A DNA stretch of 64,000 bases from Malacoraja senta (lineage: Eukaryota): the NCBI GenBank assembly GCA_038087875.1, contig CM075981.1, forward strand, positions 1,116,001 through 1,180,000, written 5' to 3'. This document shows, piece by piece, positions 12,260-38,354 of this stretch; position 1 is the first letter of the stretch, and the number at the start of each line of letters is the position of its first letter. The notes beneath the pieces are model-generated. The model saw only the letters and a program-made list of their open reading frames with translations. It ran no database searches and had not been told where the DNA came from. A program made the position numbers and the translations under genes.

Positions 12260-12580
12260 CAGTGCCGTTGATTTTCACTAGGAAACTGCAGCGCACGTCA
12301 CTGCTGGAGATGGACACGTTGACCATTTCACTGGATTTTGTTCCATTATTATTTGCGGCTGTGCAGTAATATTGATGGTGCTGGTGTTTGAAGAATTGAC
12401 AATGTAGATCCAGGGAATTGTTGTCCGTGATATTTGAATCCACAGATAGGGTCTTTTCATACCAGGTGTAGCTAATGGGAAGTGATCCCCGGACCGACTC
12501 ACAGGACACTGTCACTGAGCCCCCGAGACAGGAGACACTGACTGGTGACAGAAATCCAAGCACAGGAACAGACACGGTGT
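12260..12580 (-). CDS. FCRL-like Ig C2 domain exon (C2b'), intact, 321 nt, phase 1-1
   Basis: ctttccacag|ACACC...ACTG|GTAAGT encodes DTVSVPVL...VTVSCESVRGSLPISYTWY...YYCTAANNNG. The C.S..GS.PI.Y.W and Y.C.A.N patterns are typical of FCRL/CD31-type C2 domains. Confidence 0.92.
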
Positions 12581-13375: not shown

Positions 13376-13747
13376 GAATTACCAGCAGGAAAGGGGAGCA
13401 TCGTTTATGCAACAGTGTTGGATATTCAAAGCAACAAGGAAGATGCCCATTTGTCTAATGGGAATCAAACTGTGTATGGAGTGCAATTTCGAAGGAAATC
13501 GACAGGGACACACTCCAGTACAGATGAGGACAATGTCAGCTACACAGATATTACATTTCAAAGCGACAGCCAAATTGCCCGTCAGAAAGGTCCTTCTCCT
13601 CACAATCCATTCACCAGATTTATACATCTCTGTGTCTCTCCATCCTCCCAGCTGCCAGAACAACCATGTCTGCCACTGTACCAGTACACAGCAGCACCAT
13701 CTCCCTTTGTTTTACAATTCCAGCATCTGCAGTTAATCTTCTTTTAA
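13376..13747 (+). pseudogene. Antisense-oriented paralogue of the ITIM terminal exon (copy 1), open for 123 codons
   Basis: cttttacttttcag|GAA, phase 0. Encodes ELPAGKGSIVYATV...EDAHLSN...VSYTDITF and aligns with the 4398 exon. No plus-strand Ig or TM exons were found upstream. Confidence 0.75.
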
Positions 13748-13760
13748 TCTGAAACTCGGC

Positions 13761-13905
13761 CACAATCCTACAAAACCAACATTCAATCAGCTCATTAGTG
13801 CAACAGTATCACTATCAACAACTTTTTAATTTCCTTGTATAAAACTGTTGAGAATGATACTGTTGCATGAATGAGGCGTGTGAATGGCGGTATTGTAGAA
13901 TTGTG
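13761..13905. repeat. Long inverted repeat (hairpin), copy 1 of 3
   Basis: Arms ctcattagtgcaacagtatcactatcaaca and tgttgagaatgatactgttgcatgaatgag. Other copies at 23286-23424 and ~38153-38290. Confidence 0.85.
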
Positions 13906-13974
13906 TGTGGGGAGCGAATGGGAAAGAGGAATAACATAAAACTAGTGTGACCGGTGATCGCTAGTCAATAGGCA

Positions 13975-14861
13975 ATAGACAATCAACAACAGGTGCAGGA
14001 GTAGGCCATTCGGTCCTTCAAGCCAGCATCGCTATTCAATGTGATCATGGCTAATCATCCCCAATCAGTACCCATTCCTGCTTTCTCCCCATATCCCCGG
14101 ACTCCGCTATCTTTAAGAGCTGTACCTAGCTCTCTTGAAAGTATCCAGAGAACCAGCCTCCACCACCCTCTAAGGCAGAGAATTCCACAGACTCACAACT
14201 CTCCGTCAGAAAAAATGTTTCCTCGTCTCAGTAATAAATGGCTTACCACTTATTCTTAAACTGTGGCCCCTGGTTCTGGACTCACCCAACATCGGGAACA
14301 TGTTTCCTGCCTCTAGCGTGTCCAAACCCTTAACAATTTTATATGTTTCAATAAGATACCCTCTCATCCTTCTAAGCTCCAGAGTGTACAAGCCCAGCCG
14401 CTGCATTTTCTCAGCATATGACTGTCCCGCCATCCCGGTAATTAAACTTGTAAACCTACGCTGCACTCCCTCAATAGCAAGAATGTCCTTCATCAAATTA
14501 GGGGACGAAAACTGCTCAAAATACTCCAGGTATGGTCTCACTAGGGCCCTGTACAACTACAGAAGGACCTCTTTGCTCCTATGCTCGACTCCTCTTGTTA
14601 TAAAGGTCAACATGCCATTTGTTTTCTTCGCTGCCTGCTGTACCTGCATGCGTATTTTCATAGACTGATGAACAAGGAACCCCAGATCCCGTTGTACTTC
14701 CCCTTTTCCCAACTTGACACCATTTAGATAGTCATCTGATTTCCTGTTTTTGATACCAAAGTGGATAACCTCACATTTATCCACATTAAACTTCATCTGC
14801 CATGCATCTGCTAACTCCCCCAACCTGTCCATGTCAGCCTGCATTCTCATAGCATCCTCCT
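13975..14861 (-). mobile_element. CR1 LINE 3' part, truncated by the assembly gap; same insertion site as the CR1 at 38355-42810
   Basis: CR1 RT C-terminal ORFs. Both copies follow ggtgatcgctagtc. Confidence 0.85.
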
Positions 14862-15061
14862 NNNNNNNNNNNNNNNNNNNNNNNNNNNNNNNNNNNNNNN
14901 NNNNNNNNNNNNNNNNNNNNNNNNNNNNNNNNNNNNNNNNNNNNNNNNNNNNNNNNNNNNNNNNNNNNNNNNNNNNNNNNNNNNNNNNNNNNNNNNNNNN
15001 NNNNNNNNNNNNNNNNNNNNNNNNNNNNNNNNNNNNNNNNNNNNNNNNNNNNNNNNNNNNN
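14862..15061. other. Assembly gap (200 N)
   Basis: Run of N. Confidence 1.
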
Positions 15062-18000
15062 ACCTAAGGCACTAACATCAGTCTGTAATATAACTGAAGG
15101 TGATTCAATCAAATTTTGCTGGAACAACTCGAAATGTTTCTAATCCACCACTGAATTTCAACAATGGCTTCAGTTGGCAATTGCATGGGTCTATTGAAAT
15201 GACCTGCATGATTCCTGGGTGCCTGTACCTTTGCCCTCTGTAACTGTTGGTAATGCAAAGGTCCATAATGTGCAGCTGGAAAGGCTGCTACCAATTTGCC
15301 AATCAAGCTGGCCACATGCCTAATTGAAGGTGATTGCTCTTCCATGAGCTTGATACAGCCTTCAATTAAATCTAATCTCTTGCCCTTGGGTAGAGTTACA
15401 GACATGCGAGTTGAATTAACTGTGAATCCCAGAAAATCAATAACTTTAACCAATACAATACAATACAATACGGTTTTATTCGTCACATTGCACATAAAGT
15501 GCAAGTGAAATGAACATAACCGGTATCAATTTTGATTTAGTTGGATGAATTAGAAACCCCAGTGTCTCAAACACGAGTTAAACAGCTGAAACAGATAACT
15601 CAGCTGCTTCCCAAGTTTTCCCAATTATTAAGATATCATCTAAATAAGCCATTACAATGTGACCCTGAACCAGGAGTAGTCCGAATGCTGGTTAGCAGCT
15701 TTGTAAATAATCTAGGGGCTGAGGTTAACCCATTAGGCAGCGCTTTAAATTGCCACAACTGCCTCATCCAACTAAATTTCAAATATCTCCGATGGTCTTC
15801 ATGAACAGGCACTGAGTAATATGCATCCTTTAAATCTATACATGCCATATAACACCCTCTGAAAACCAATTGCTTGGCAGTGGCAAAGTTTCCATCTTGA
15901 AATGCTTATACTGCACAAACGGATTAAGGTCCGTCAGGTCCAAAATAATCCGACTATCACCATCTTTCTTTGGTCTAGGAAAAATGTTAGATACGAATTG
16001 GTGAGGTTGACAAACTGTTTTCTCAATTACACCTTTTATATATAATTTTTTTTAATTTCAGCCTGAACCTCCAAATTTTCTTTTTGTGAGAACACAAGTG
16101 CCCGCCTTGGTTTATGTTGTGTAGGCGGACACAAATTAGAAATGAATTCAATTCGAAACCCTTGTATAGCTTGCAGTTATAAACAATTCTGATGTTATCC
16201 CATACCATTCTTTCAGAAACCAGTGTAACCTTCCCCCAACTGGTAGGTAATTCTCACTGGATATGTTTCGACAAGCACCAGACCCACCTACCTCCATGGT
16301 TACAGGTGGAGTTCTTTGTCCCCTGGCTCTGGTGGGAAACGGCATGGTTGCTCGTGCTGCTGCTGGAGTGTGCCAGCTGCGCACATTGAATGGCCCGGAC
16401 CCGGTTTCGGCAAACCGCTTGTAGGGGTGCTGCCTCCGAAGGGTTCTGCTGGTCATTGGCACCTTAATGAGCCCGACGGTCTTTGCCTCGTCATCCAACT
16501 CCTTCACCCGCTTACCGAGGTCTTCCCCAAACAAAAGATTTGGTGGCTGGACGTTGCTTGGCTTACTCAGGGCAGCGAATTTCGGGTTTAATTGTAGGGC
16601 GGATGGCGCTCTTTCTAAAGCAGTTTTAATCTCAAAGTGCACATCGCACATGAGAGCCAGGGCATCCTGCTGAACCTCAGTCAGGTGCCCCCCATCCACC
16701 AACATCCCGAATGCCGTAATGCCAGAAGCAAGTAGCTTCAGTATCCTAGAAACATAGAAACATAGAAAATAGGTGCAGGAGTAGGCCATTCCGCCCTTCT
16801 AGCCTGCACCGCCATTCAATATGATCATGGCTGATCATCCAACTCAGTATCCTGTACCTCCATACCCCCTGATCCCTTTAGCCACAAGGGCCACATCTAA
16901 CTCCCTCTTAAATATAGCCAATGAACTGGCCTCAACTACCTTCTGTGGCAGAGAATTCCAGAGATTCATCACTCCCTGTGTGAAAAAATGTTTTTCTCAT
17001 CTCGGTCCTAAAAGATTTCCTTAAATGGTAACCCCTTGTTCTGGACTTCTCCAACATCGGGAACAATTTTCCCTGCATCTAGCCTGCCTTAAGAATTTTG
17101 TAAGTTTCTATAAGATCCCCCCTCAATCTTCTAAATTCTAGTGAGTACAAGCCGAGTGTATCCAGTCTTTCTTCAAATGAAAGTCCTGACATCCCAGGAA
17201 TCAGTCTGGTGAACCTTCTATGTACTCCCTCTATGGCAAGAATGTCTTTGCTCAGATTTGGAGACCAAAAACTGTACGCAATACTCCAGGTGTGGTCCCA
17301 TCAAGACCCTGTACAACTGCAGTAGAACCTTCCTGCTCCTATGCTCAAATCCTTTTGCTATGAATGCTAACATACCATTCGCTTTCTTCACTGCCTGCTG
17401 CACCTGCATGCCTACTTTCAATGACTGGTGTACCATAACACTCAGGTCTCGTTGCATCTCCCCTTTTTCTAATCGGCCACCATTCAGATAACAGTCTACT
17501 TTCCTGTTTTGCCACCAAAGTGGATAACCTCACATTTATTCACATTATACTGCATCTGCCATGCATTTGCCCACTCACCCAGCCCTATCCAAGTCACCTT
17601 GCAGCCTCCTAGCATCCTCCTCACAGCTAACACTGCCCCCAGCTTCGTGTCATCCACATACTTGGAGATGTTGCATTCAATTCCCTCGTCCAAATCATTA
17701 ATATATATTGTAAATAGCTGGGGTCCCAGCACTGAGCCTTGCGGTACCCCACTAGTCACTGGCTGCTATTCTGAAAAGGACCGTTTACTCTGCAGTTTCA
17801 TCTCCTGCGCCCTGATGCCTACTCCCATATGGCCCCAAATGGCATGGTTTACTGCTGGCACTTTAAGCTGGATGCAATTAGCAGGGGTATCATATCTACG
17901 AGCTGTTGCATCCACGGTCAGCTCTTGAAGCTGGTGCGAGGCCAAGTAGTTTATTGTGGCAGCCAATTCCTCACCCAGCGGCTCCACCGAATCTGTCTGG

Positions 18001-18689: not shown

Positions 18690-18834
18690 ATCCATATGGA
18701 TAGACAGGAATAATAAAAACGGATCAATTCTAATGGTGGGAGATGGGGCAATAAATATGGAAACAGATGAGGCCAATTAATAAAATTAATAAAACATGAT
18801 AATGCTTAATCTCACACCCTCGATATTACTTGGA

Positions 18835-19018
18835 TTACCGCGGTAAGTGTGTGGATGGGGAACTCGTGCTCGAAAAATCGGTTAAAGGTTCGGTAATATC
18901 AGCGTGCATTTTATTAACGTTCTTATTTCCTAACGCAAATATCACACAGAGTGTGATAGAAAGCCAGATCCATTTCAATTGTAATAAGATAAATAACAAA
19001 GTGTTCCCACTTTCATGA
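18835..19018 (-). CDS. Transmembrane plus short tail exon with an intramembrane Lys (activating, adaptor-coupled type)
   Basis: tattccctcacaatatag|T CAT is a phase-2 acceptor, matching the AG| end of the stalk exon. Encodes (S)HESGNTLLFILLQLKWIWLSITLCVIFALGNKNVNK...THLPR*; the tail has no Tyr. Confidence 0.72.
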
Positions 19019-19731
19019 CTATATTGTGAGGGAATATTCAGGGATATTATTTTTTTAATGGTTTCAAGGTTCAATGTGTAAGAGAGGGTCAGTTCGCTGT
19101 TTTCGGTCTGATTCAAGACTGTTTTCTCACATTATTTAACTAATAACTGGTTTGCAAGTTATATATATATTATTAATTAATATTTAAGAGATAAATTTAT
19201 ATTTGGTGTCGGGCTTGAAACATGTACAAACATTGATTATGTTTCCTGATATTTGGGTTCATTGGATCAAAGACCCAAAGAGAAACACTGTATCATTTGG
19301 CCGTTCAGTCAACTGCTTTCACACGATTCCTGTGTCAATCCTATTTTTAATTTCCCCCACTTTCTCAACAACTAACACTACCGTCCAATAACCCCCCCCC
19401 CTCCCCCGCCCCACCCACTCTTCACAGATTCAACTGCTCTCCTGTACACACGGGGCAATTTACAACTGGCTCATCTTTGGGGGCTGGGAGAAAACTGGAA
19501 CACAATTAAAGGCAAAACATACAGACCACACATAGCAGCACCTAATGAATCTATGTCCTGGCGTTGTGAGGCTTTGGCTCTACAAGCTGTGGCATAGTGC
19601 ATTCAGATCAATACTCTCACGTATTTAATGCCAGTGAAAGGAAGGCACAACTTTCTCCCAAATAAAGCATTCCCAATTAGTACACCAGCAATTAGTACAT
19701 TGTAACTTTCATTGGAAAAAGGGCATTTTAC

Positions 19732-19780
19732 CTTGCAGAGTAATTGGATGTTATCGAATTTTCACAAGAATATTCATGAC
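19732..19780 (-). CDS. Stalk exon (49 nt, phase 1 to 2)
   Basis: ttttatttccttgttccaacag|GTCAT...GCAAG|GTAAAA encodes (G)HEYSCENSITSNYSA(S). Confidence 0.82.
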
Positions 19781-21012
19781 CTGTTGGAACAAGGAAATAA
19801 AAGTCAGTTTCACTGCTTTTCACTTGCAGTTGAACAAGTGGGTATGATTTTCCGATTTATGGAGTTGATAGGCTTCTTCTGTGTGATTTGCAGTAAATGG
19901 GAGATGTTATCATACCAAGCAGGAGTGATGGGAACAACTCTGGCGCCAGGTTTAGATGGCACGGTGGCGCAGCGGTAGAGTTGCTGCCTTACAGCGTCTG
20001 TACGGAATTTGTACCTCCTCCGTGTGACCGCGTGGGTTTTCTCCAAGCACTCCAGTTTCCCCGCATTCTGAAGTCGTGCAAGTTTGTTGGTTAATTGGCT
20101 TCTGTAAATTGTCCTCATGGAACTAGTGTACTGGTGATTACTGGACTTTGTGTACTCAGTGGGCCGAAGAGCCTGCTTCCACGATGTATCCATAAACTAA
20201 TCAAAAGGGTGCAATTTCACTTGAAAGGAGTATTGCTTGGGATGAAACATTACCGTTATGGGGAGGGGCTGGATAGGGGTTTTATAAAATTCCATGCAGA
20301 ACAGGTGAGGAAGGGGGAACCCGTTACAGGTGTGCAAAACTGTGAGCAGCATAGACAGGGTATTTTGGAACATATTGCATGACAGATATGTGTAAAGTGG
20401 AGAACATATGGTTAAGTTAAGGAGCAGGATGTTTCAAGGGTATCAAGACATATTTTTAAACCGAGAAGATAGAGGTACCTGAATTGCCACAATGGACGAG
20501 GTGGTGGTAAATGGGATTAGTATTGATAGTACTGAATGGTCAAGATTAACACAGTGGACAAAATCAGATACCGTCGTCAAGGAGATAACTGTGGCCACAT
20601 TTACTGATAATTTCTGATCCCTTCCCATATTTGAGTGTTGGTCTTATGGAGATGATGGAAAGTGAAAATGCTTGGACTGATGTCACTGCAAACCTAGTTT
20701 AAAGCTGTGTAAACATAAGAGGTAGTTCTAGCCCGGAAGATGGCCTACACCAGCACTGGAAAAACTATTTCTGTAGCCCAGCAATAAAATATTGACAATA
20801 ATTCCATCAATTTTAGCTGGATAAGTTAATTAAATAACGTGCATGGATTTCAGGGTGTCGGGGTTATGGGGAGAAGGCAGTAGAATGGGGTGAAGAGGGG
20901 AAGATAGATCGGCCATGATTGAATGGGTCTATTTCTGCTTCTTACACGTGTGATCTTATGAACCACCCCACGCCAACTTCCCCTTCTTCTCCTCATTCCC
21001 TCCACCACTTAC

Positions 21013-21335
21013 CAGCGCCATAGATTTTCACGAGGAAACTGCAGGGCATGTCACTGCTGGAGATGGACACGTTGACCATTTCACTGGATTTTGATCCACG
21101 TTGATTTGAGGCTGTGCAATAATATTGATGGTGCTGGTGTTTGAATGATTGACAATGTAGATCCAGGGTTTTGTCGTCTCTGAGATCTTGGAATCCTTAG
21201 ATGGGGTCTTTTCATACCAGCTGTAGCTAATGGGAAGGGATCCACTGACCGACTCACAGGACACTGTCACTGAGCCCCCGAGACAGGAGACATTGGCTGG
21301 TGACAGAAATTCAAGCTCAGGAACAGACACTGGTT
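21013..21335 (-). pseudogene. FCRL-like C2 exon (C2b) with a 2-bp frameshift (323 nt versus 321 nt in its paralogue)
   Basis: Splice sites are intact. TCA GA GAC GAC contains a dinucleotide duplication at ~21177-21182, giving a premature TGA at 21030-21028. Confidence 0.8.
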
Positions 21336-21519
21336 CTGTGGGAAAGGAGGAAACACTGGGAACATCTGAAAAATCAAACACTCGCCAATATCCAGCATTT
21401 CTGTATCTTAGCCAGAGCCGCCAGGTTGGAATCTGACCCATCCATCTCCATAGAGTCATAGAGTCATACAGAGTAGAAACAGGCCCTTCAGTCGAACTTG
21501 CCTGTGCTGACCAACACGA

Positions 21520-22345
21520 CATAGAAACATAGAAACATAGAAAACATATAAAATAGGTACAGGTGGAGGCCATTCGGCACTTCGAGCCAGCACCGCCATT
21601 CATTGTGATCATGGCTGATCGTTCCCTATCAATAACCCGTGCCTACCTTCTCCCCATATCCCTTGACTCCACTAGCCCCTAGAGCTCTATCTACTGTACT
21701 CTCTCTTAAATCCATCCAGTGGCCTCCACTGCCCTCTGTGGCAGGGAATTCCATAAATTCACAACTCTCTGGGTGAAAAAGTTTTTTCTCACCTCAGTCT
21801 TAAATGACCTCCTATAACACGGTGGCCCCTGGTTCTTGACTCGCCCAACATTGGGAACATTTTTCCTGCATCTAGCTTGTCCAGTCCTTATATAATTTTA
21901 TATGTCTCTATAAGACCCCCCCCCCTCATCCTTCTAAACTGCAGTGAATACAAGCCTAGTCTTTTCGATCTTTCCTCATATGACAGTCCCGCCCTCACAG
22001 GGATCAATCTCGTGAACCTACGCTGCAATGCCTCAATCACAAGGATGTTCTTCCTCAAATTAGGAGACCAAAACTGTACACAATACTCCAGATGTGGTCT
22101 CACCAGAGCCCTATACAACTGCAGAAGAACCTCTTTACTCCTATACTGAAATCCTCTTGTTATGAAGGCCAACATTCCATTAGCTTTCTTCACTGCCTGC
22201 TGTACCTGCACGCCAACTTTCAGTGACCGGTGTACAAGGACATCCAGTTCTCGCTGTACCCCCCCCTTACCTAACCTAACCCCATTGAGATAATAATCTG
22301 CCCCCCTTCGTTTTGCAGCCAAAGTGGATAACCTCACATTAACCT
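21520..22345 (-). mobile_element. CR1 LINE 3' part with (TTCTATGT)n tail, nested in an older CR1 end
   Basis: ORF 21888-22337 is CR1 RT C-terminus; the insert is absent from the 12.7-kb paralogue. Confidence 0.85.
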
Positions 22346-22896
22346 CACGACCAATCTACACTAGTTCCACCTGCCCTTTCTTGGCCCTTAACCCCCTAAA
22401 CTTATCTTATTCATATACCTGTCCAAATGTTTCTTAAATGTTGCGATAGTACCTGCCATAACTACACCTGTCGGCAGTTCGTTTCATATACCTACCAACA
22501 TTTGAGTAAAAACGTTACTCCCCATGTCCTTGTTAAATCATTCCCCCCTCATCTTAAACCTATGTCCTCTGGTTCTCGATTCCCCTACTCTGGGCAAACG
22601 ACTTTGTGCATTTACTCGATCTATTCATCGCATGATTTTGCACCTGCCATAAGATCATCCCTCATCCTCATGCGTTCCAAGAAATAATGTCCTAGTCTGC
22701 TCAATTTTCTATTGTCTATTGTCTATTGTCTATAACCCCTCCCTGTAAGGCAGGCCCTCAAGTCATCGCATCATCCTTGTAAGTCTTCTCTGCGCCCTAT
22801 CCAACGTAACAGCATCTTTCCATAATCATGGTGATTAAAACGGACCATAAATCAGACAAATCATCAGACAATCTTGCAATCTCTTTTACATTTCAG

Positions 22897-23269
22897 GAAT
22901 TGCCAACAGGAAAAGGGAGCATCGTTTATGCAACACTGTCGGACATTCAAAGCAACAACGAAGCTGCCCATTGGTCTAATCAAAATCAAAATGTGTATGC
23001 AACAGTGCAATTATGAAGGAAATCGACAGGGACACTCCTGTGCAGATGAGGACAATGTCTGCGACACAGATGTTACATTTCAAAGCGACAGCCAAATTGC
23101 CCGTCAGAAAGCTCCTGCTCCTCACAATCCATTTAGCAGATTTATACTTCTCTGTGTCTCTCCATCCTCCCAGCTGCCAGAACTACCATGTCTGCCACTG
23201 TACCAGTACACAGCAGCACCATCTATCTTTGTTTTTCAATTCCAGCATCTGCAGTTAATCTTCTTTTAA
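22897..23269 (+). pseudogene. Antisense ITIM-exon paralogue (copy 2), truncated after 39 codons
   Basis: cttttacatttcag|GAA encodes ELPTGKGSIVYATLSDIQSNNEAAHWSNQNQNVYATVQL*. A 2-bp deletion follows downstream. Confidence 0.72.
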
Positions 23270-23579
23270 TCTGAAACTCTGCCACAATTCTACAATACCA
23301 ACATTCAATCACCTCATTAGTGCAACAGTATCACTATCAACAACTTTTAAATTTCCTTGTATAAAATTGTTGATAGTGATACCGTTGCACTAATGAGGTG
23401 TGTGAATGGCGGTATTGTAGAATTATGTTTAGGGAGCGAATGGGAAAATATAATAATATAGAACTGGTGTGACCGGTGATCGCTAGTCGGTGTGGACTCC
23501 ATGGGCCGAAGGATCCGTTTTCAAGTTGCATTTGTAAACTACTACTAAATATCCGGGTGAACCTTTTCTGCAACCTCCG

Positions 23580-24975
23580 TTTTCACCACCCCGCTCGCAC
23601 AGCTCGCAATTGGCCCTGACCTTACTCTTTTATCCCTTCTCGAACTTTCCTTCCCAATAATTCGAGAATAGTTGTAATTTTTCCTGTACTCACTTCCCCT
23701 TCAACTCCATCTTTATACTTCCAATTTGTCAATCCCTCCCCCCCACACTCTTTAGTTTTAACCCACACGTGTAATACCTAGCAAACCTGCCTGCAAGATC
23801 GTCCAGTTAAGGTGTAATCCGCCCCTTTTGTGCAGGTCACCCCTACCCAAGAAGAGATCCCAGTAGTTTATTAATCTAAATCCTTGCTCCCTGCACCAGG
23901 CCCTCAGCCACACATTCAGATCCACGATCTCCCTGTTCCTGTCCTCACTAGCACGAGGTAGTGGAAGCAATCCAGAGATAACCACCCTAGAAGTCCTGCT
24001 TTTCAGTCTTCTTCCTAACTCTCTGAACTCACTTTGGAGAACCTCCTTCCTCTCTTCCCGATGTCGGTTTGCCTACATGCACAATTACTGCCGGCTGTTC
24101 ACCTTCTCTCTCGAGGATGTTCTGAATTCGGCTCGTGATATCTTGAACCCTGGCACCAGGGAGGCAACAGACCATCTGCACGTCTCATCGGCCGCCACAG
24201 AATCTCCTGTCTGCTCCTCGGACAATGGAGTCACCCACCACTATGGCTCTGCCCGACGCCGGTCATGTCCCATCTCTAGAAGTGGAGCCACCGATGTGTC
24301 CGTTGCTTGGACTGGAAGCATCGTCTCTCCCGATAGTTCCCAAGGGAGCGTACCTGTTTTCATTAGGCACAGCCACCTGGGTCTCGGGCACTCCACGGTT
24401 ACCACCCTTTCTCTCAGTCACACACCTCCGTTCTTCCCATATCCTCGGCGTGACAACGTCACTGTAGGTCCTGTCCAGGAAAATCTCGTTTTCCCGGATG
24501 GCCCTGAGGTCATCCAACTGAGGTTCTCCAGTGCCCCAACACGGTCCTTCAGGAGCTGAACCTGAACACACTTGCCACAGTAGTAGCAGCCAGAGGCTCC
24601 ATCCGTGTCCCAGGGCTCCCATTTCCTGCAAACATCACTCTGCCTCATCTTACGCATCATGTGTTCACCGCGTCCCATCCTCTCCAGCTTCTTGCACAGC
24701 CTCCTCTCCTCAGCCTCCTCGAAGACTCTCGAGCCAAAGACTCACACTTTACTCACAACGCACTTCCCTCACAAGGCCGCTCCCTCACTGTGGCTCCCCT
24801 AGAGCAGCCTGAAAAATTGACTGATAATTTGCCTAATTTGCCAATTTACAAACGAAATTCTTCAGATTTAAACTGTTTTTTCCCTGTGACTGACACCTTT
24901 CCCACGGGTTTCAGCCTATAAGCTCTTCTCCCTGCTTCTCTTGATTGCTGCTTCTCCAAGATCCACATAAGTACT
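23580..24975 (-). mobile_element. CR1 5' portion (ORF1 zinc finger plus SGNH-esterase remnant), paralogous to ~41370-42790
   Basis: Encodes CRKWE...CGKC and VVISGLLP...LNW motifs. Confidence 0.8.
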
Positions 24976-25186
24976 GAGGGCTCTGTGGGCCGAAGGATCC
25001 GTTTCCATGTTGCATTTGTAAACTACAACTAAATATCCCGGTGAACTTTTTCTGTAACCTCTCCAAACCTTTCACATCTTTTGTTTTATAAAGCGGCGAC
25101 CAGAACTGTGCACCAGACTCCCACCTAACAAATGTTTTGTGCCGATGTCAAAGTGGAGACATAAAGTCACTCAGTGAGAAACCTAC

Positions 25187-25504
25187 CTTCAGATACTTGG
25201 AGATGTACTTTAAATGTTGGTTCGCCAGGTGTACTAATTCCACAGCTGTACCATCCTGTATCTCCAGAGTGAAGATCCTCCACAGTCACAGTAAATATTC
25301 CTCGTGCCAGGTTATCTGTGATTGACACTCTTCCGCTCTGTCCATGTTTCCCATTTGTTTCCACTACATGTGTACACTGGCGACTTGTCCCAGGGCACCA
25401 GTATTTTGTGTGTGAGCGGTACACTGCTGCATAGTGACAATCGATTGTGATCGCTCTTCCCACAACTCCTCTTACTTCGCTTTCTGCCCACAGTGCGCCT
25501 GAAA
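25187..25504 (-). CDS. CD300/pIgR-like Ig V-domain exon (V2'), intact, phase 1-1
   Basis: ccttcag|TTTCAG...GAAG|GTAGGT encodes (V)SGALWAESEVRGVVGRAITIDCHY...KYWCPGTSRQC...GRVSITD...DTGWYSCG. The second Cys pair in C-C' is characteristic of CD300/pIgR/TREM. An alternative acceptor at 25498 is also in frame. Confidence 0.93.
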
Positions 25505-25929
25505 CTGAAGGAAAAATATTTAATAAATAGAAGAGCAAAATAGCCTTTCACAAACATATACATTATAGTATTCATGAATGTGTACAAGGGAGTCTGCCCA
25601 ATCATTTCTTAACTCTGTTGAATTCCACCTAGATTGCGATGAGAGACAGATACTGTACACCGTCCCTCACCATCTGCACAGGTCGTTCCAAAGCGCTTCC
25701 CAGCCAATGTGGGTGTGAATCGTGAAGAATGATGCATTGAACACGGAGCCTGTTGCAATTGGAAGGCGCTGCCTAGGGCGTCTTGGTGAGTTGCTGCAGT
25801 GCATCGTGCAGATGGTGCAAACTGCTGCTGTTCTGAATCAGCGGGGGAGATTGAGGATGGGGTGTCTATCAAGCGCGATTCTCGGTCATGAAACCAAGCA
25901 AAAGTGTTTAGCGAAACTATGGCCTAGGC

Positions 25930-26165
25930 CAGTGCTTCTTAAACTGGTGAATGGTTCACTCAAGGGTGAATGAAATTATTTTGGGGTGAATGAGTTAATT
26001 TTTTTTTGCTCATGTGACAAAATAAATGATCTATAAAATTATACACAAGGGAGAATAAGACGAAAATTACCCCAAAAAATCATTAAAAAATTTAGTCGAA
26101 GGTGAATGAAATGTTGTGATAAAGACTCAATGGTGAATGACACTGAAATAGTTTAAGAAGCACTG
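25930..26165. mobile_element. hAT-type MITE; paralogous copy at 43774-44014
   Basis: 16-bp TIRs CAGTGCTTCTTAAACT / AGTTTAAGAAGCACTG with an 8-bp TSD gcctaggc/gccttggc. Confidence 0.88.
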
Positions 26166-26785
26166 GCCTTGGCTGCGCTACTTCTCGCTGTTGTAAACCA
26201 TGCACGCTCTCTTCTGGTCTTCCAATCTGAGCATCTCCTCGCCTATTGGGGGTTTCATTTTAAAATTCTCTTTGACAAAATAAGGGTTATACTCGATGGA
26301 GTGACGACCACGGAGATTCCACTTTCATGTTGTGAGATTACTGGAGTTACAGTGATTCACACAAATTAACAGAGTTAAAATCATGAACAAGATCATGAAA
26401 TTGTACATCCTTTGTTATAAATGATGATGGATCAAAAAAAATGCATTTGGTTGCTTTCTCAGTCTCAAAGTGACTGTGAGATCTTAAATGGCAGCCAGAA
26501 AATCATTTTTAAGGCAGAAGGCAGAAATTTGATGGAATGCACTCAACCCGTTGTGATAAGTGCAGATCTTTCTCTCCTTTCGAAGTTCAACACCTCCCAG
26601 GTGAAAGCAACAGGCAATTATTTGCCAGTCCCCCAAACAAACTCTCGCATTTTACGCCAGGAGCTAAATGATGCCGCCTGCAAATACCAAGAAACCCACG
26701 AACATCACCACAAGGTGAAAAGCAGCAGCTCCAAGAACACGAGATGAATTGTGAAGCAGTATTCCCACGGGAAATTAACACTCAC

Positions 26786-27106
26786 CTGTATTGTTGATTT
26801 CTGTCACATAACTGCACGTTCCTGCTTCTTTGAATACTTTCACGTTGAGTATTTCACTGGAGTTTGTCCCACGATTATTTGAGGCTTTGCAGTAATATCG
26901 AAGGTGTTCGCCTCTGAGGATTTCACAACTCAGGTCCAGTTGATTCCTCGACACATTCGTTGACCACCCATACTCGTTCTTCTCAAACCATGTGTAATTG
27001 ATGGGAAGTGATCCACGGACAGACTCACACGACACTGACACTGAGCCTCCGAGTCGTGAAGCATTTGCTGGTGACAGATATCTGAACACAGGAGCAGACA
27101 CAGGTT
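26786..27106 (-). CDS. FCRL-like Ig C2 exon (C2a'), intact, 321 nt, phase 1-1
   Basis: cattcccacag|AACCT...ACAG|GTGAGT encodes EPVSAPVF...SCESVRGSLPINYTW...YYCKASNNRG. Confidence 0.92.
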
Positions 27107-27496
27107 CTGTGGGAATGGAGCAAACATTCAGTCACCTGTATGAACAGATAAAATCCAAACACTTGCTAAATCTCAGCAGCCTTTTATCTCAGCCCGAACC
27201 ATCCGTTTGATTTCTCACCGGCTCATCTACATCTCTGTGAGTGTGTGAAGCCCAGAAACCGAAGAAGGTTAGAGTTATGGAGAACCGAAAGAGACCCATC
27301 ACAACAGCTCATTCATGCCAAACAACATGTCTTTCTAGGCAATTTCCATGTCCCTTATCACTCGCATTGATCCCAATCACTTCCGGTGGGGCGACATGTT
27401 GGAGTAGTCGCACTTTTCCACGCTCCCGACCTTTTCACCTTTTCACCTCCAACTAACCAGGCCGACTCGGGCAGGGAGGACTAACCAGTGACAGCC

Positions 27497-28211: not shown

Positions 28212-28256
28212 TCATAAAACGGGATTGTGAGGTGAAATTTATTTACACACGCAACT

Positions 28257-31200
28257 ATGGCATACACTGAAGGAATTCAGTCATTTACATCTGGAAATGG
28301 CAGTCAAGTAATTAAAATAATAAGCGAAAAGAAACAACTGAAGTTACAACCATTTGAATATACCGATCACAATTTACAGGATTTGGAATACGATATAGAC
28401 CCGGACAATAATTTTTACTTTAATTCTAACGACAAAAATATCTGCTGCTACTACACAGAGGAACAGTATAATCAGAATATTAATGCAAAAGGCAAATTAT
28501 CTATTATCCACTTTAATAGCAGGAGCCTCTATGCGAATTTCAATAGTATTAAAGAGTATTTACAAAAATGTTTACAGCCATTCAATGTCATCGCAATATC
28601 TGAAACATGGATTAATCAGGAAAAGGGAATTGATTTTGAGATGGACGGATATGATTTCAATTACATCAATAGAAAAAATAAGGGGGGAGGAGGGGTAGCA
28701 CTATATGTGGATACAACTCTGAATTATAAGGTAGTAGATAATATGACAACTGTGGTTGACAATCTGCATGAATGTATAACTATAGAAATAATTAATGGTG
28801 GAAATAAAAATGTAATCATTAGTTGTATATATAGGGCAAGTATTAAAATCTTCAGGGGCTGGATGGAGAGTATGTTTTCAACAACAAGTAGTAAATCAGT
28901 GTTTTTATGTGGAGATTTCAATATTGACCTACTAAATCCTAATCAACACAACCTTACAGAAGATTTTATTAATACTATGTACAGCATGAGTCTATTTCCT
29001 AAAATCACTAGACCGAGTAGAATTACTTCCCATTGCGCTACACTCATTGACAATATATTTAATAATGATGTGGAAAATAAAATAGTAAGTGGATTATTAA
29101 TTAATGATATAAGTGACCATCTGTCAGTTTTTATAGTTTATGATAATATCCACAGGAACAACAAACCAAACAAATTAATAGAATATAGACGAGTGAGATC
29201 GGAGGAAGCTATCAATGCACTAAAAAAGGATCTATTGGCACAAAACTGGGATATAATATACCAAAAAAGAGACATTGATAGTGCTTATGAAACATTTATT
29301 GCTATGTTTAAGTCATTATATGATAACAATTGTCCAATTAAAGAATATAATAGAAAATCAAAATATACTAAATGTCCATGGATTTCAAAGGGATTACAAA
29401 ATGCTTGTAAAAAAAAAAATGCCCTATACAGAGATTTTATAAGAGAGAGAACTAAAGATACAGAAAATAAATATAAAAAGTATAAAAATAAATTAACTTA
29501 CATCATAAGAGAAAGCAAGAAAGATTATTATAAGAAGAAATTAGATGACAATAAAGACAATATAAAAATAATATGGAGCATACTTAATAGCATTATCAGA
29601 AATGGTCCGGGGAGAACAAATTACCCGAAGTATTTTATTGATAAGGATAAGGAAAATTACAATATGGAAGATATAGCTAATAGCTTTAATAATTTTTTTG
29701 TAAATATTGGACCAGACCTGGCTAAACAAATCCCTGATTCAGGGACATCTGGAGAAACTCCTGAGAATTTAGTGGAGAGAAATCCCTGCTCTATGTTTCT
29801 TACGGCAGTAGAAGAAAAAGAACTGTTGGATATTGTCAAAACATGTAAAAATAAAAAGTCTACCGATTTCAATGACATTGACATGTCGCTAGTTAAGATG
29901 GTCATTGAGGGGATCTCCAAACCTTTAACATTCATCTGTAATTTATCCTTCCAAACCGGTACTTTTCCAATTCAAATGAAAATAGCAAAAATAATACCAA
30001 TATACAAAACTGGGAACAAGCATCATTTTACAAACTATAGACCTGTTTCCTTACTCCCACAATTTTCCAAAATATTAGAAAAAATGTTTAATAATAGATT
30101 AGACAAATTTGTAGAAAAGAATAAATTAATCACAGAAAGTCAATATGGATTCAGAACAAATAGATCAACATCACTTGCAATACTAGAATTAATTGAAGAC
30201 ATCACAAACGCCATTGATAAAAAATTATATGCAGCTGGGATATTCATTGACATAAAAAAAGCATTTGATACAATTAATCATGATATTTTATTAAAAAAAT
30301 TGGAGAGGTATGGAATTAGAGGAATAGTACTGGACTGGATTAAAAGCTACTTAAGTAACAGGCAACAGTTTGTAAATCTGGGTAGTCACATTTCTACATG
30401 CTTGGACATTGTGTGTGGTGTACCACAGGGGTCAGTGCTGGGCCCAAAATTATTTATCATGTACATAAATGATATTTGTAATGTGTCCAATGTCTTGAGG
30501 CTGGTTTTGTTTGCAGATGATACAAATATTTTTTGTTCTGGGGAAAATTTAAAACAGCTATTGGATAAAATAATAAAAGAAATGGGTAAATTGAAAATAT
30601 GGTTTGATAGGAATAAAATTTCATTAAATCTGAGTAAAACTAAAATAATGTTATATGGTAATTGTAGAATAAATACACTAGTAAGTATAAAGATAAATGG
30701 GGTGGAAGTTGAAAGAGTGCATGAAAATAAATTTCTTGGGGTTATAATTGACGATAAAATAAGCTGGAAATCACATATTAAACATGTAAAATTAAAATTG
30801 TCAAAAAGTATCTCTGTATTATACAAAGCCAAGCAAGCTCTGGATTACAAATCACTCCGTATTCTTTATTGTTCATTAATTTTACCCTACTTAAATTATT
30901 GTGCAGAAGTCTGGGGTAATAATTATAAAAATTCGATACACTCATTAACCATGATGCAAAAAAGAGCAATTCGTATTATCCATAATGCTAAGTATCTGGG
31001 TCATACGAATCCATTATTTTTAGAGTCAAAATTATTAAAATTAGAAGATTTGGTTACATTCAAAACAGCTCAGATAATGTTTAGGGCCAAAAATAAAAAA
31101 TTACCTGGAAACATTCAAAAATTATTTAACGAGCGTGTGGGGGGTTACAATTTAAGAGGAATATTTAACTTTAAGAAACAAAAAGTCCGTACGACTAGAA

Positions 31201-31343
31201 AAACCTTTTGTATTTCGGTTTGTGGAGTAGGAGTGTGGAATAAATTGAACTGGGAATTGAAGCAATGCACAAACATGAATCATTTTAAAATGATATATAA
31301 AAAAATAATTCTCAAGGGGTACAGGGATGGAGGGGATGGTTGA
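28257..31343 (+). CDS. LINE ORF2 (APE endonuclease plus reverse transcriptase), uninterrupted, 1028 aa
   Basis: Contains [45 protein letters not shown] and FADDT. Confidence 0.95.
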   Translation: MAYTEGIQSFTSGNGSQVIKIISEKKQLKLQPFEYTDHNLQDLEYDIDPDNNFYFNSNDKNICCYYTEEQYNQNINAKGKLSIIHFNSRSLYANFNSIKEYLQKCLQPFNVIAISETWINQEKGIDFEMDGYDFNYINRKNKGGGGVALYVDTTLNYKVVDNMTTVVDNLHECITIEIINGGNKNVIISCIYRASIKIFRGWMESMFSTTSSKSVFLCGDFNIDLLNPNQHNLTEDFINTMYSMSLFPKITRPSRITSHCATLIDNIFNNDVENKIVSGLLINDISDHLSVFIVYDNIHRNNKPNKLIEYRRVRSEEAINALKKDLLAQNWDIIYQKRDIDSAYETFIAMFKSLYDNNCPIKEYNRKSKYTKCPWISKGLQNACKKKNALYRDFIRERTKDTENKYKKYKNKLTYIIRESKKDYYKKKLDDNKDNIKIIWSILNSIIRNGPGRTNYPKYFIDKDKENYNMEDIANSFNNFFVNIGPDLAKQIPDSGTSGETPENLVERNPCSMFLTAVEEKELLDIVKTCKNKKSTDFNDIDMSLVKMVIEGISKPLTFICNLSFQTGTFPIQMKIAKIIPIYKTGNKHHFTNYRPVSLLPQFSKILEKMFNNRLDKFVEKNKLITESQYGFRTNRSTSLAILELIEDITNAIDKKLYAAGIFIDIKKAFDTINHDILLKKLERYGIRGIVLDWIKSYLSNRQQFVNLGSHISTCLDIVCGVPQGSVLGPKLFIMYINDICNVSNVLRLVLFADDTNIFCSGENLKQLLDKIIKEMGKLKIWFDRNKISLNLSKTKIMLYGNCRINTLVSIKINGVEVERVHENKFLGVIIDDKISWKSHIKHVKLKLSKSISVLYKAKQALDYKSLRILYCSLILPYLNYCAEVWGNNYKNSIHSLTMMQKRAIRIIHNAKYLGHTNPLFLESKLLKLEDLVTFKTAQIMFRAKNKKLPGNIQKLFNERVGGYNLRGIFNFKKQKVRTTRKTFCISVCGVGVWNKLNWELKQCTNMNHFKMIYKKIILKGYRDGGDG

Positions 31344-32429: not shown

Positions 32430-35400
32430 AAATGGCAAACTGGGACAGGGCGGGATGGAGACAGGAGTAAAGCAAGGGTTACTTGAAGTTAGAGAAGTCA
32501 ATATTCAAGTCGCTGGGTTGTAGGCTGACCAATCGAATTATGAGCTGCTGTTCCTCCTATTTGGATTTGGCGTCACTCTGACAGTGGAGGAGGTCCAGGA
32601 CAGAATGGTGAGTTTGGAAATGGGAGCGGGAATTAAAGTGTTTCACAATCGGGAAGTAGCGTAGGCCGAGGCAGACTAAGAGGAGTTGTTCAGCGCCAGG
32701 TGCATTGAGATGGGGCTCCTAAGGGACCGTATTACGAACCTGGAGCAGCAGCTCGATGACCTCCATCTGGTCAGGGAGAGCGAGGAAGTCATAGAGAGGA
32801 GTTAGAGAGAGGTGGTCACTCCAAGACCACAAGAGGCAGGCAAGTTGGTCACGGTTAGGAGGGGCAAGGGGCAGAGGCAGGGACTAGAGAGTACCCCGGT
32901 GGCTGTACACCTTGACAATAAGTATTCCTGTTTGAGTACTGTTGGAGGGGACAACCAACCTGGGGGTAGCGACAGTGGCCGGGCCTCTGGTACAGAGACC
33001 GGCCCTGTTGCACAGAAGGGTAAGTAAAATAAGAGGAGGGCAGTAGTAATAGGGGACACTATAGTTAGGGGGTCAGATAGGCGATTCTGTCGACGCAGTC
33101 AGGAGACACGGATTGCCTCCCTGGTGCCAGAGTCTGGGATGTATCTGAACGTGTCCAAGATATCCTGAAATGGGAGGGAGAGGAGCCCGAGGTCGTGGTA
33201 CATATAGGTACCAATGACATAGGTAGAAAAAGAGAAGAGGTCCTGAAAGGAGAATTTAGGGAGTTAGGAGGAGAGTTAAGGAGAAGGACCGCAAAGGTAA
33301 CAATCTTGGGATTACGGCCTGTGCCACGCGACAGTGAGAGTAGGAATGGAGCGAGGTGCAGGATAAGTGCGTGGCTGAAGGACTGGTGCAGAGGGCAGGG
33401 ATTCAAGTTTCTGGATCATTGGGACCTCTTTTGGGGAAGGTGTGACCTGTACAAAAAGGACGGGTTGCACTTGAACCCGAGGGGGACCAATATCCTGGCG
33501 GGGAGATTTGCAAAGGCTACTGCGGTGACTTTAAACTAGAATGGTTGGGGGGAGGGACTCAAATAGAGAAAGCTAGTAGGCAGTGTGTGAGGCAGGAGGC
33601 AGAGAAGGGAAGCACTCAGACCCAATATGTAGGGGGGAAAGAAGAAAAAAATTAATAAACAGAGAATAGGATGTGGTGGGTTTCTTAACTGTGTGAGCAG
33701 CGAGACAGAGGGGTGTAAAATGAGGGTAGAAGCAATAGGTAGCAAGGTGAAAAAGTAAACGTTGCAGGCAGACAAATCCAGGGCAAAAATCAAAAAGGGT
33801 CACTTTTCATGATAATTGTTTAAGGGGTAAGAGTGTTGTAAAATCAATCCTGAAGGCTTTGTGTCTCAAAGCAAGGAGCATTCGTAATAAGGTGGATGAG
33901 TTGAATGTGCAGATAGCTATTAATGATTATGATATAGTTGGGATCACGGAGACATGGCTCCAGGGCGGCCAAGGCTGGGAGCTGAACATCCAGGGATATT
34001 CAATATTCAAGAGGAATAGAAAGAAAGGAAAATGTGGTTAGAGAGGAGATTAACGCAATAGAAAGGAAGGACATTAGCTTGGAGGATGTGGAATCGATAT
34101 GGGTAGAGCAGCGAAACACTAAGGGGCAGAAAACGTTAGTGGGTGTTGTGTACAGGCCACCTAACAGTAGTAGTGGAGTTGGGGATAGAATCAAACAGGA
34201 AATTAGAAATGCGTGTAACAAAGGTAAAACAGTTATAATGGGAGACTTCAATCTACATATATATTGGGTGAATCAAATTGGCAGGGGTGCTGAGGAAGAG
34301 GATTTCTTGGACGGTATTGGTTTTCTAAACCAACATGTAGAGGAACCAATGGGAGAGCAGGCTTTTCTAGACTGGGTATTGAGTAATGAGGAAGGGTTAG
34401 TTAGCAGTCTTGTTGTGCATGGCCCCTTGGGCAAGAGTGACCATAATAAGGTTGAGTTCTTCATTAGGATGGAGAGTGACATTGTCAATTCAGAAACAAG
34501 GGTTCTGAAGTTAAAGAACGGTGACTTTGAGGGTATGAGACATGAATTGGCCAAGATGGACTGGCAATTGATTCTTAAAGGGTTGACGGTGGATATGCAA
34601 TGGAATGCATTTAAAGACTGCATGGATGAACTACAACAATTGTTCATCCTAGTTTGGCAACAGAATAAATCAGGGAAGGTAGTGCATCCGTGGATAACAA
34701 GGAAATCAGGGATAGTATCAAAACAAAAGATGAAGCGTACAAATTAGCCAGAAAAAGCAGCCTACCAGAGGACTCGGAGAAATTCAGAGTCCAGCAGAGG
34801 AGGACAAAGGGCTTAATTATGAAAGAAAACTGGCAGGGAACATAAAAACTGACTGCAAAAGTTTTTATAGATATGTGAAGAGAAAAAGATTAGTTAAAAC
34901 AAATGTAGGTCCCTTGCAGTCAGAAACAAGTGAATTGATCATGGGGAACAAGGACATGGCAGACCAATTGAATAACTACTTTGGTTCTGTCTTCACTGAG
35001 GAAGACATAAATAATCTGCCGGAAATAGCAGGGGACCGCGGGTCAAATGAGATGGAGGAACTGAGGAACTGGTTAGCCGGGAAGTGGTGTTAGGTAAATT
35101 GAATGGATTAAAGGCCGATAAATCACCAGGGCCAGATAGGCTGCATCCCAGAGTACTTAAGGAAGTAGCCCCAGAAATAGTGGATGCATTAGTGATAATT
35201 TTTCAAAACTCCTTAAATTCTGGAGTAGTTCTTGAGGATTGGAGGGTAGCTAATGTTACCCCACTTTTTAAAAAGGGAGGGAGAGAGAAAACGGGGTATT
35301 ACAGACCAGTTAGTCTAACATCGGTAGTGGGGAAACTGCTAGTGTCAGTTATTAAAGATGGGATAGCAGCACATTTGGAAATTGGTGAAATCATTGGACA

Positions 35401-37200
35401 AAGTCAGCATGGATTTACGAAAGGTAAATCATGTCTGACGAATCTTATAGAATTTTTCGAAGATGTAACTAGTAGAGTGGATAAGGGAGAACCAATGGAT
35501 GTGTTATACCTGGACTTTCAGAAGGCTTTCGACAAGGTCCCACATAAGAGAATAGTATACAAACTTAAAGCACACGGTATTGGTGGTTCAGTATTGATGT
35601 GGATAGAGAACTGGTTGGCAAACAGGAAGCAAAGAGTAGGAGTAAACGGGTCCTTTTCAGAATGGTAGGCAGTGACTAGTGGAGTACCACAAGGCTCAGT
35701 GCTGGGACCCCAGCTATTTACAATATATATTAATGATTTTGACGAGGGAGTTGAATGCAACATCTCCAAGTATGCGGATGACACGAAGCTGGGGGGCAGT
35801 GTTAGCTGTGAGGAGGATGCTAGGAGGCTGCGAGGTGACTTGGATAGGCTGGGTGAGTGGGCAAATGCATGGCAGATGTAGTATAATGTGGATAAATGTG
35901 CGGTTATCCTCCTTGGTGGCAAAAACAGGAAAGTAGACTATTATCTGAATGGTGGCCGATTAGGGAAAGGGGAGATGCAGCGAGACCTGGGTGTCATGGT
36001 ACACCAGTCATTAAAAGTAGGCATGCAGGTGCAGCAGGCAGTGAAGAAAGCGAATGGTATGTTAGCATTCATAGCAAAAGGAGTATAGGAGCAGGGAGGT
36101 TCTACTGTAGTTGTACAGGGTCTTGGTGAGACAACACCTGGAGTATTGTGTACAGTTTTGGTCTCCAAATCTGAGGAAAGACATTGTTGTCATAGAGGGA
36201 GTACAGAGAAGGTTCACCAGACTGATTCCTGGGATGTCAGAACTTTCATATGAAGAAAGACTGGATAGACTCGGCTTGTACTCGCTAGAATTTAGGAGAT
36301 TGAGGGGGAATCTTATAGAAACTTACAACATTCTTAAGGGGTTGGACAGGCTAGATGCAGGAAGATTGTTGGGGAAGTCCAGGACAAGGGGTCACAGTTT
36401 AAGGATCAAGGGGAAATCTTTTAGGACCGAGATGAGAAATACATTTTTCACAAAGAGTGGTGAATCTCTGGAATTCTCTGCCACAGAAGGTAGTTGAGGC
36501 CAGTTCATTGGCTATATTTAAGAGGGAGTTAGATGTGGCCCTTGTGGCTAAAGGGATCATGGGGTATGGAGAGAAGGCAGGTACAGGATACTGAGTTGGA
36601 TAATCAGCCATGATCATATTGAATGGCAGTGCAGGCTCGAAGGGCCGAATGGCCTACTCCTGCTCCTATTTTTTATGTTCTATGTTCAATGAAATGATCG
36701 TCGAGCCTGCGCTTGATCTCCCATTTACGATATCTGCTTTTTCACAACTGGAACAGCGGATATAGTAGATCAGGTTAGAGGAGATGCAAGTGAACCTCTG
36801 CCTCACCCGAAAAGACTGTTGGAGTCCTTGGATGGAGTGGACGGAGGAGGTATAGGGACAGGTGTTGCATCTGCTGCAGTTGTTGGGGAAGGTACCTGGG
36901 GAAGGGGCGGTGACCAAGGAGTTGCGGAGGAAACGGTCTCTTCGGTAAACAGAAGGTAGTGGAGATGGAAAGATGTGGCCTCACCCGAAAAGACTGTTGG
37001 AGTCCTTCGGCGGAGTTGACGGAGGAGGTATATAGACAGGTGATGCATCTCCTGCAGTTCTTATGGAATGTATCTGGGGAGGGGCTGGTTTGGGTGGGAA
37101 AGGACGAGTTGACCAGGCAGTTACGGAGGGAACTGTCTCTTCGGAGAGCACAATGTGCTGGAGATGGAAAGATGATGTCAGTTGTGGGATCCCATTAGAG
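32430..37200 (-). mobile_element. Penelope-like fragment (32430-32700 and 36690-37200) split by a CR1 insertion; orthologous to the Penelope at ~52550-52710 and 59635-60235
   Basis: Encodes GTFPNNCSRCNTC...FTCISSNLIY. The sequence rejoins across the CR1 insert (ttcagcg|aaatgatcgtcgagcctgcgc). Confidence 0.75.
32700..36685 (+). mobile_element. Near full-length degenerate CR1 (esterase ORF1, broken APE-RT ORF2)
   Basis: Encodes VHIGTNDIG, GDFN, GPLGKSDH, YRPVSLTS and [10 protein letters not shown]; the 3' tail is ttttatgttctatgtt. Confidence 0.9.
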
Positions 37201-37769
37201 GCGAGTCGTACAGCGTAGAAACAGGCCCTTCGGTCTAACTTGCCCACGCTGACCAACACGCCCAATCTGCACTAGTTCCACCGGCCCTTGCTTGGCCCCT
37301 CTAAACTTACCCTATTCATGTACCTGCCCAAATTTTTCTTAAATGTTGCGATAGTACCTGCCATAACTACTTCCGTCGGCAGTACGTTTCATATACCTGC
37401 CACCCTTGTGTAAAAACGTTGCTCCCCAGATTCTTGTTAAATCATTCCCCCCTTATCTTTAAACTATGTCCTCTGGTTCTCGATTCCCCCGCTCTGGACA
37501 ACAGACTCTGTGCATTTACTCGATCTATTCGTCGCATGATTTTTTTTAATATCCCTCATCCTCCTGCGCTCCAAGAAATAAAGTCATCGACCCCTCCCTG
37601 AACATGTCCCTGTAGGTCGGGCCCTCAAGTCATCACAATATCCTTGTAAGTATTGTAAGTCTTCTCTGCGCCCTATCCAATTTGTCAGCATCTATCCTAT
37701 AACATGATTAAAACTGACAACAAATCAGACAAATCATCAGACAATCTTTGATTATCTTTTTCATTTCAG

Positions 37770-38136
37770 GAATTACCAGCAGGAAAGAAGAGCATCGTTT
37801 ATGCAACAGTGTTGGATATTCATAGCAACAAGGAAGCTGCTTTGTCTAATGAGAATCAAACTGTGTGTGGAGTGCAATTTCGAAGGAAATCGACAGGGAC
37901 ACTCCAGTACAGATGAGGACAATGTCAGCTACTCAGATGTTACATTTCAAAGCGACAGCCAAATTGCCCGTCAGAAAGCTCCTTCTCCTCACAATCCATT
38001 TACCAGATTTGTACATCTCTGTGTCTCTCCATCCTCCCAGCTGCCAGAACAACCATGATTGCCACTGTACCAGTACATAGCAGCACCATCTCTCTTTGTT
38101 TTATATTTCCAGCATCTGCAGTTAATCTTCTTTTAA
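37770..38136 (+). pseudogene. Antisense ITIM-exon paralogue (copy 3), frameshifted
   Basis: tttttcatttcag|GAA encodes ELPAGKKSIVYATV...STGTLQYR* (TGA ends at 37916). The VSYSDV ITIM survives in another frame. Confidence 0.72.
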
Positions 38137-38354
38137 TCTGAAACTCTGCCACATTTCGACAACACCAACATTCAATCACCTCATTAGTGCAACAGTATCA
38201 CTATCAACAGCTTTTTAAATTCCTTGTAAAAAATTGTTGATAGTGATACTGTTGCACGAATGAGGTGTGTGAATGGCGATATTGTAGAATAGTGTGTAGG
38301 GAGCGAATGGGAAAGAGGAATAACATAGAACTAATGTAACCGGTGATCGCTAGT

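Follow-up and report, generated by a model that had tools for sequence, protein, structure and literature searches.

A 64,000-nucleotide (nt) stretch of contig CM075981.1 of the skate Malacoraja senta (assembly GCA_038087875.1, positions 1,116,001 to 1,180,000; hereafter the window) carries a cluster of immune-receptor genes, whose recognizable exons all lie on the minus strand. Three blocks on its plus strand, starting at 13376 (copy 1), 22897 (copy 2), and 37770 (copy 3), resemble the terminal exon of such receptors, that is, the exon of the cytoplasmic tail with its immunoreceptor tyrosine-based inhibitory motifs (ITIMs). Their presence raises the question of how a tail exon came to lie in reverse within the introns of receptor genes, and whether it has any role there. 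The blocks are most probably inert pseudo-exons, that is, reverse copies of a terminal exon carrying ITIMs and immunoreceptor tyrosine-based switch motifs (ITSMs), which belongs to a paralogous tail type of the CD300/pIgR-like (MDIR-type) family. They have no same-strand partner exons, they show no purifying selection, and they carry shared as well as private disabling changes. Today, they most likely do nothing but ride along in their host introns.

Homology of the Blocks to Sense Tails

In agreement with the acceptors described in the initial annotation of this DNA, each block is directly preceded by a pyrimidine tract and an AG, and the first codon is GAA in every case. Copy 1 is indeed open for 123 codons (13376-13744) with the motifs IVYATV and VSYTDI, and copies 2 and 3 are cut short, by stops at codons 40 and 49, respectively, yet retain IVYAT(L/V). 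The VYATV that had been quoted in the alignment belongs to copy 2, and copy 1 has VYGV instead.

The proposed alignment of copy 1 with the sense exon of the local inhibitory gene (4126-4398, minus strand) was recovered by tblastn in the window (30% over 80 aa, E 2.6e-5), where the two exons run colinear from codon 1 onward, and BLASTP gave an E of 5e-8 for the same pair. At the DNA level, 13365-13609 matches 4409-4162 (62% over 253 nt, E 2.5e-16), with the homology beginning 11 nt before both acceptors. The profile alignment that had been proposed as a check (hhalign against four sense tails) gave a probability of 99.8% and an E of 3e-30, in support of the homology.

The search of copy 1 against 1.8 billion representative proteins returned five proteins at E up to 0.001. 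The best match is XP_078277136.1, a pIgR-like isoform X2 of Rhinoraja longicauda (E 1.6e-24, 72% identity), in which codons 1-80 of copy 1 correspond to residues 779-859 of 870. The second is the pIgR-like XP_072886821.1 of Hemitrygon akajei (E 6.8e-5), and the remaining three of the five, which are much longer or repetitive, match only weakly and in several stretches. Because identity to the local sense tail is 30% and the tail of Rhinoraja is far more similar, the blocks represent a second tail type of the family.

In the Rhinoraja protein, the tail is preceded by a V domain, a stalk, a transmembrane (TM) segment, and a cytoplasmic segment. In detail, after a TM (ending ...WYRKRKTKG) the model continues into another V domain, and the stalk, a second TM, and the tail come next. 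It has the appearance of two neighboring genes fused by read-through, and thus the sense tail probably belongs to a single-V receptor. Searches for shorter single-V proteins with the tail type of copy 1 found none.

The copies share with the batoid tails (XP_078277136.1, XP_072886821.1, and the FCRL5-like model P0007 of Pristis pectinata) the same exon start and the same order of tyrosine motifs, that is, IVYAxL, VYAxV, and V(S/T)YxDI, although identity to copy 1 falls from the 72% of the Rhinoraja tail to 41% in that of Hemitrygon. On the contrary, the batoid tails are sense and located after TM and cytoplasmic exons, whereas the copies of the window are antisense to all neighboring exons and have no partner exons.

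One Event Copied with the V-C2 Units

Self-comparison of the window showed that 10645-13966 is similar to 19500-23488, and 22346-27376 to 37257-44451 and 48905-49701. Copies 1, 2, and 3 belong to the V-C2 units A, B, and C, respectively, and within each unit the block is placed at the same relative position, in the intron ahead of the C2b exon. The three copies therefore go back to one event that was copied, and not to three independent ones.

All three blocks had been assigned to introns between V2 and C2b exons, a description which strictly applies to copy 2 only (V2 at 25191-25529 and C2b at 21011-21336). Copy 3 is located after the V2 exon of unit C (43031-43348), but this unit is without C2b and the homology breaks at 37203. 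Copy 1 is found before C2b' (12258-12596), and upstream of it there is no V exon, only retroelement fragments and a gap. The homology of unit C with units A and B ends ~90 nt before the expected C2b acceptor, with retroelement fragments beyond this point.

Copies 1 and 3 have a common downstream insertion of a long interspersed element (LINE; 13361-14861 vs 37755-39252, 91%), which copy 2 does not have. Identity of the upstream intron is ~92% between copies 1 and 3 and ~82% between either of them and copy 2. The shared LINE and the flank divergence therefore agree in grouping copies 1 and 3.

A single insertion or duplication would have placed the tail exon, together with its acceptor and some 3' sequence, in reverse in an intron of a V-C2 unit, namely the one ahead of the membrane-proximal C2 exon, and segmental duplication would then have multiplied this unit. 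The first split would have separated unit B from the common ancestor of units A and C; the latter two, which share the later LINE, would be the closest pair. The earlier proposal that the 3' end of a divergent paralogue was inverted long ago is thereby retained in part: the paralogue is divergent (30% identity to the local tail and 72% to that of Rhinoraja) and its copies are neutral and broken, but neither three separate events nor a simple inversion is upheld. A simple inversion was rejected as the origin, since the C2b exon adjoining the block is not inverted, and an event in which only the tail exon was inserted or duplicated, in reverse, would be the better fit.

Signs of Decay

The motif xIYAxVxS and a stop form the end of the skate, sawfish, and local sense tails. 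In the skate and sawfish this last motif is positioned 34 codons past the D of DEDNV, and in the local exon 32 codons. On the contrary, in the copies of the window the last motif is out of frame: in all three, ATTTAT is found 92 nt past DEDNV (2 mod 3), that is, 10 nt short of the 102 nt implied by the skate and sawfish proteins. The shared 92-nt spacing shows that the ancestor of the three copies was already without the C-terminal frame. Judged from the sequence, codons 81-123 of copy 1 are read-through, in agreement with the database match, which ends at residue 80. No predicted protein with the open reading frame (ORF) of copy 1 beyond residue 80 was found in two large collections.

The stop codon of copy 2 corresponds to a change from CGA to TGA, and a 2-bp deletion in the (AC)3 run is common to copies 2 and 3. 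Since copies 1 and 3 are the closest pair in the tree of the flanks, this shared deletion would have to be explained by homoplasy, by gene conversion, or by reversion of copy 1. In copy 1, the only open copy, a fragment of a short interspersed element (SINE) is located 16 nt ahead of the acceptor, where a branch point is usually expected; it is absent from copies 2 and 3.

The ratio of nonsynonymous to synonymous substitutions (dN/dS; Nei-Gojobori, 80 homologous codons), which had been suggested as a check for a neutral relic, is 1.01 for copies 1/2, 2.48 for copies 1/3, and 1.34 for copies 2/3, the counts being small. A ratio of 0.3 or less was rejected in each pair (P 0.008, 0.016, and 0.002, respectively).

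In accordance with the initial annotation, tblastn with two full-length family proteins found neither a leader, V, or C2 exon nor a TM or cytoplasmic exon on the plus strand of the window. Low-stringency tblastn of the window with the segments that precede the tail in the Rhinoraja model (stalk, TM, and cytoplasmic) gave plus-strand matches at the level of noise only, the sole credible TM being that at 8540-8629 of the minus strand. Altogether, all three copies display homology to C-terminal tails and a conserved exon start with its acceptor. What they do not display is a set of motifs of the ITIM consensus S/I/V/L-x-Y-x-x-I/V/L in one open frame to the usual stop, purifying selection on the coding part, or upstream leader, immunoglobulin (Ig), TM, and cytoplasmic exons on the same strand, such exons being found only on the minus strand.

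A Conserved Island and a Hairpin

The segment 13514-13813 shows a star-like pattern among the three copies, and may be a gene-conversion tract, a sign of constraint, or a product of chance. Directly after the block, a near-palindrome of 145 nt is present in all three units; the one of unit A has a folding energy (dG) of -35.6 kcal/mol (z -7.3). The Rfam scan of 12600-14100 returned generic hairpin matches only, far below gathering scores. The near-palindrome may be similar to a miniature inverted-repeat transposable element (MITE-like), or it may be a fold-back junction from an inverted duplication. The depth of DNA words in the bin of the near-palindrome is ~17x that of the exon bin.

RNA and DNA Reads and the Assembly Gap

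The region 8450-14449 was compared with one true RNA run and three DNA-like runs. The RNA run comes from a related species ~3-5% diverged from the window, as judged from DNA contigs of the same study, and ~6% of it was read. The run searches returned mostly small runs, which have only SINE words in common with the window. In the RNA run, depth is zero on both strands of 13450-13649, with ~1 read on 13650-13849, ~1 read on C2b', and none on the TM exon. The RNA reads that pile up at 13250-13449 belong to the SINE, and the pile has its loose ends at 13274 and 13358. The DNA-like runs contain both the (AC)3 and the (AC)2 forms, and contigs with the 2-bp deletion map at 13508-13513.

The left flank of the assembly gap at 14862-15061 is the LINE shared with unit C, the right flank is a unique fragment with a reverse-transcriptase match, and there is no colinearity across the gap. 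Every copy is found on one gap-free stretch with its adjoining minus-strand exons, and thus the antisense relation is independent of the gap. For the same reason, the gap was rejected as the cause of the antisense arrangement.

Alternative Explanations

Several observations weigh against inert pseudo-exons. Copy 1 retains its acceptor, an open frame, and two consensus ITIMs. The segment 13514-13813 is more alike between units (92-95%, copies 1/2) than its flanks are (82-89%). The homology of QIYTSL in copy 1 to the last motif of the family was inferred from position and a short DNA resemblance, and the stingray tail is without this motif altogether. Lastly, the RNA data are uninformative on plus-strand transcription, as the host exons are nearly uncovered too. 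The acceptor, ORF, and ITIMs of copy 1 and the uninformative RNA data would also suit a plus-strand gene with 5' exons beyond the left end of the window, in which copy 1 would still serve as the 3' terminal exon and copies 2 and 3 would be dead duplicates of it. This is very unlikely: the 13.4 kb to the left of copy 1 contain no plus-strand Ig, TM, or cytoplasmic exon, the next gene at the left begins with a minus-strand leader (85-135), dN/dS between copies 1 and 3 is 2.5, the C-terminal motif is out of frame, a young SINE fragment is placed 16 nt before the acceptor, and the ORF past residue 80 occurs in no predicted protein of the two collections. The related suggestion of the initial annotation, that is, the 3' exon of an overlapping antisense gene, finds no support in view of the missing plus-strand partners, dN/dS of at least 1, the shared frameshift, and the SINE at -16 of the only open copy. 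Its other suggestion, a latent signaling module which a future re-inversion could attach, draws on the same acceptor and ITIMs of copy 1 but is hardly credible. The blocks are upstream of the C2b and TM exons, and thus re-inversion would cut the receptor chain short of its membrane anchor, so that a secreted product would bear the cytoplasmic motifs. Furthermore, the frame is already damaged in all copies, an unused module cannot be preserved by selection, and dN/dS is at least 1.

Retention of the blocks as noncoding elements, for example as an intronic enhancer, a splicing element, or a template for antisense RNA, is unlikely, although the elevated identity of the island and the stable hairpin after the block in all three units are in its favor. 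The star-like pattern of the island is in keeping with a tract of gene conversion, no RNA family was matched by the hairpin, and the RNA run has no reads on 13450-13649 and ~1 on 13650-13849; moreover, the comparison covers paralogous copies only, not orthologues. The broader proposal that a tail of the copy 1 type is spliced into a plus-strand transcript, or that the 300-bp island and the hairpin act as an antisense or intronic regulator of the V-C2 module, is quite improbable. If it were true, the block would be a retained part of the V-C2 module and not a passenger; in the case of splicing into copy 1, an antisense gene nested in receptor introns would be the more interesting outcome. There is hardly any chance that the inverted orientation is an artefact of assembly. 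The gap is placed between unrelated retroelement fragments, so that the join across it may be false, but every copy shares an ungapped stretch with neighboring minus-strand exons, and the arrangement is seen three times at 82-96% identity with private substitutions. In addition, both forms, (AC)3 and (AC)2, are represented among low-coverage DNA contigs of independent runs.

Comparison and Implications

A pseudo-exon inside duplicated immune-receptor genes is familiar from pseudoexon 3 of many human KIR genes. Similarly to it, the block of the window is derived from an exon, is unused, and has been spread passively by the duplication of a multigene family. The KIR pseudo-exon, however, is sense and skipped at splicing, whereas the block lies in reverse and has as its source another part of the gene, the 3' end of a paralogue. 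The blocks are thus one more instance of an already known phenomenon, here as a passively duplicated inverted pseudo-exon.

As inert pseudo-exons, the blocks are a trace that exon shuffling and segmental duplication have left in a rapidly evolving immune-receptor cluster of skates, and they matter little by themselves. As a marker common to the V-C2 units, they are of use in placing the duplications of these units in order. They indicate that a second tail type, which is sense in Rhinoraja, once adjoined this cluster. They also serve as a warning for annotation, as an open ITIM-bearing ORF with a good acceptor is not, in this case, the end of a gene.

The Host Receptor Cluster

The window is vertebrate DNA rich in transposable elements (TEs), and its best protein matches are proteins of skates, stingrays, and sawfish. 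Its receptor exons are 50-87% identical to exons of annotated pIgR-like proteins and combine V-set domains of the CD300/pIgR type with C2-type Ig domains (table 1); in the Pfam search, the C2 exon gave Ig_3 and Ig_2 matches below the curated cut-off. On sequence grounds, the host cluster is of the CD300/pIgR-like (MDIR-type) receptor family of skates. The modular domain immune-type receptors (MDIR) of the clearnose skate are a multigene family of activating and inhibitory receptors with CD300/pIgR/TREM-like V domains (PMC3031540). Likened to them by the published description, the host cluster has CD300/pIgR-like V-set and C2 exons, an inhibitory end (uncharged TM and ITIM tail), and a TM-like stretch with Lys. 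The blocks, unlike MDIR receptor genes, are orphan tail exons, reversed, within introns.

Table 1. Positions in the window of the three blocks, of associated sequence features, and of the exons of the host cluster.
Feature	Position	Strand	Remarks
Copy 1 (80 homologous codons)	13376-13615	+	IVYATV, degraded VYGV, VSYTDI
Copy 1 acceptor tract	13360-13375	+	Pyrimidine tract
Copy 1 read-through	13616-13747	+	Codons 81-123 and stop; resembles no sense tail; QIYTSL here in another frame
(AC)3 run in copy 1	13508-13513	+	(AC)2 in copies 2 and 3, giving a frame shift between the exon halves
Copy 2	22897-23131	+	TGA at codon 40 (23014-23016), 2-bp AC deletion, Tyr to Asp in motif 3
Copy 3	37770-37998	+	Stop at codon 49 (37914-37916), 2-bp AC deletion, Tyr to Cys in motif 2, 3-bp deletion
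Young SINE fragment	13274-13360		87 nt, 98.9% identical to 39671-39758
145-nt near-palindrome directly after the block	13761-13905, 23283-23427, 38150-38294		Arms of ~60 nt
Assembly gap (N run)	14862-15061		1.1 kb beyond the stop of copy 1; touches no copy
Leader exon	62034-62084	-	Host cluster
Leader exon	85-135	-	Assigned to the next gene at the left
V-set exon, CD300/pIgR-like	60695-61030	-	Host cluster
V2 exon, unit C, V-set	43031-43348	-	Pfam PF07686, E 1.5e-11
V2 exon, unit B, CD300/pIgR-like V-set	25191-25529	-	Host cluster
C2-type exon	49101-49430	-	Host cluster
C2-type exon	26787-27116	-	Host cluster
C2b exon, unit B	21011-21336	-	2-nt insertion (frameshift) relative to unit A
C2b' exon, unit A	12258-12596	-	Frame intact; 780 nt from copy 1, on the opposite strand
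TM-like stretch with Lys	18835-19131	-	Activating-type end
Uncharged TM exon, inhibitory gene	8540-8629	-	Ends ...CYRKRKTKG; downstream of copy 1 in the minus-strand sense
Sense ITIM/ITSM terminal exon, inhibitory gene	4126-4398	-	91 codons, ends TIYASVIS and stop; comparison exon

In the C2b exon of unit B, the domain is split over two frames by the 2-nt insertion; this receptor copy may be a pseudogene, or the exon may be skipped. A direct repeat (2-1269 and 61951-63199, 89% identical) contains the leader exon. As only one leader is seen per ~62 kb, the activating-type end (18835-19131) and the inhibitory-type end (8540-8629 and 4126-4398) may have one common set of 5' exons.

Between units B and C, a single open frame of ~1030 codons is found on the plus strand (28236-31343), with a GC content of 0.31 compared with ~0.45 around it, and resembles an inserted LINE ORF that is young and may be intact. 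A tandem repeat with a period of ~78 nt is located at 44449-44775, in TE-rich surroundings, and its neighboring copies are 94% identical.

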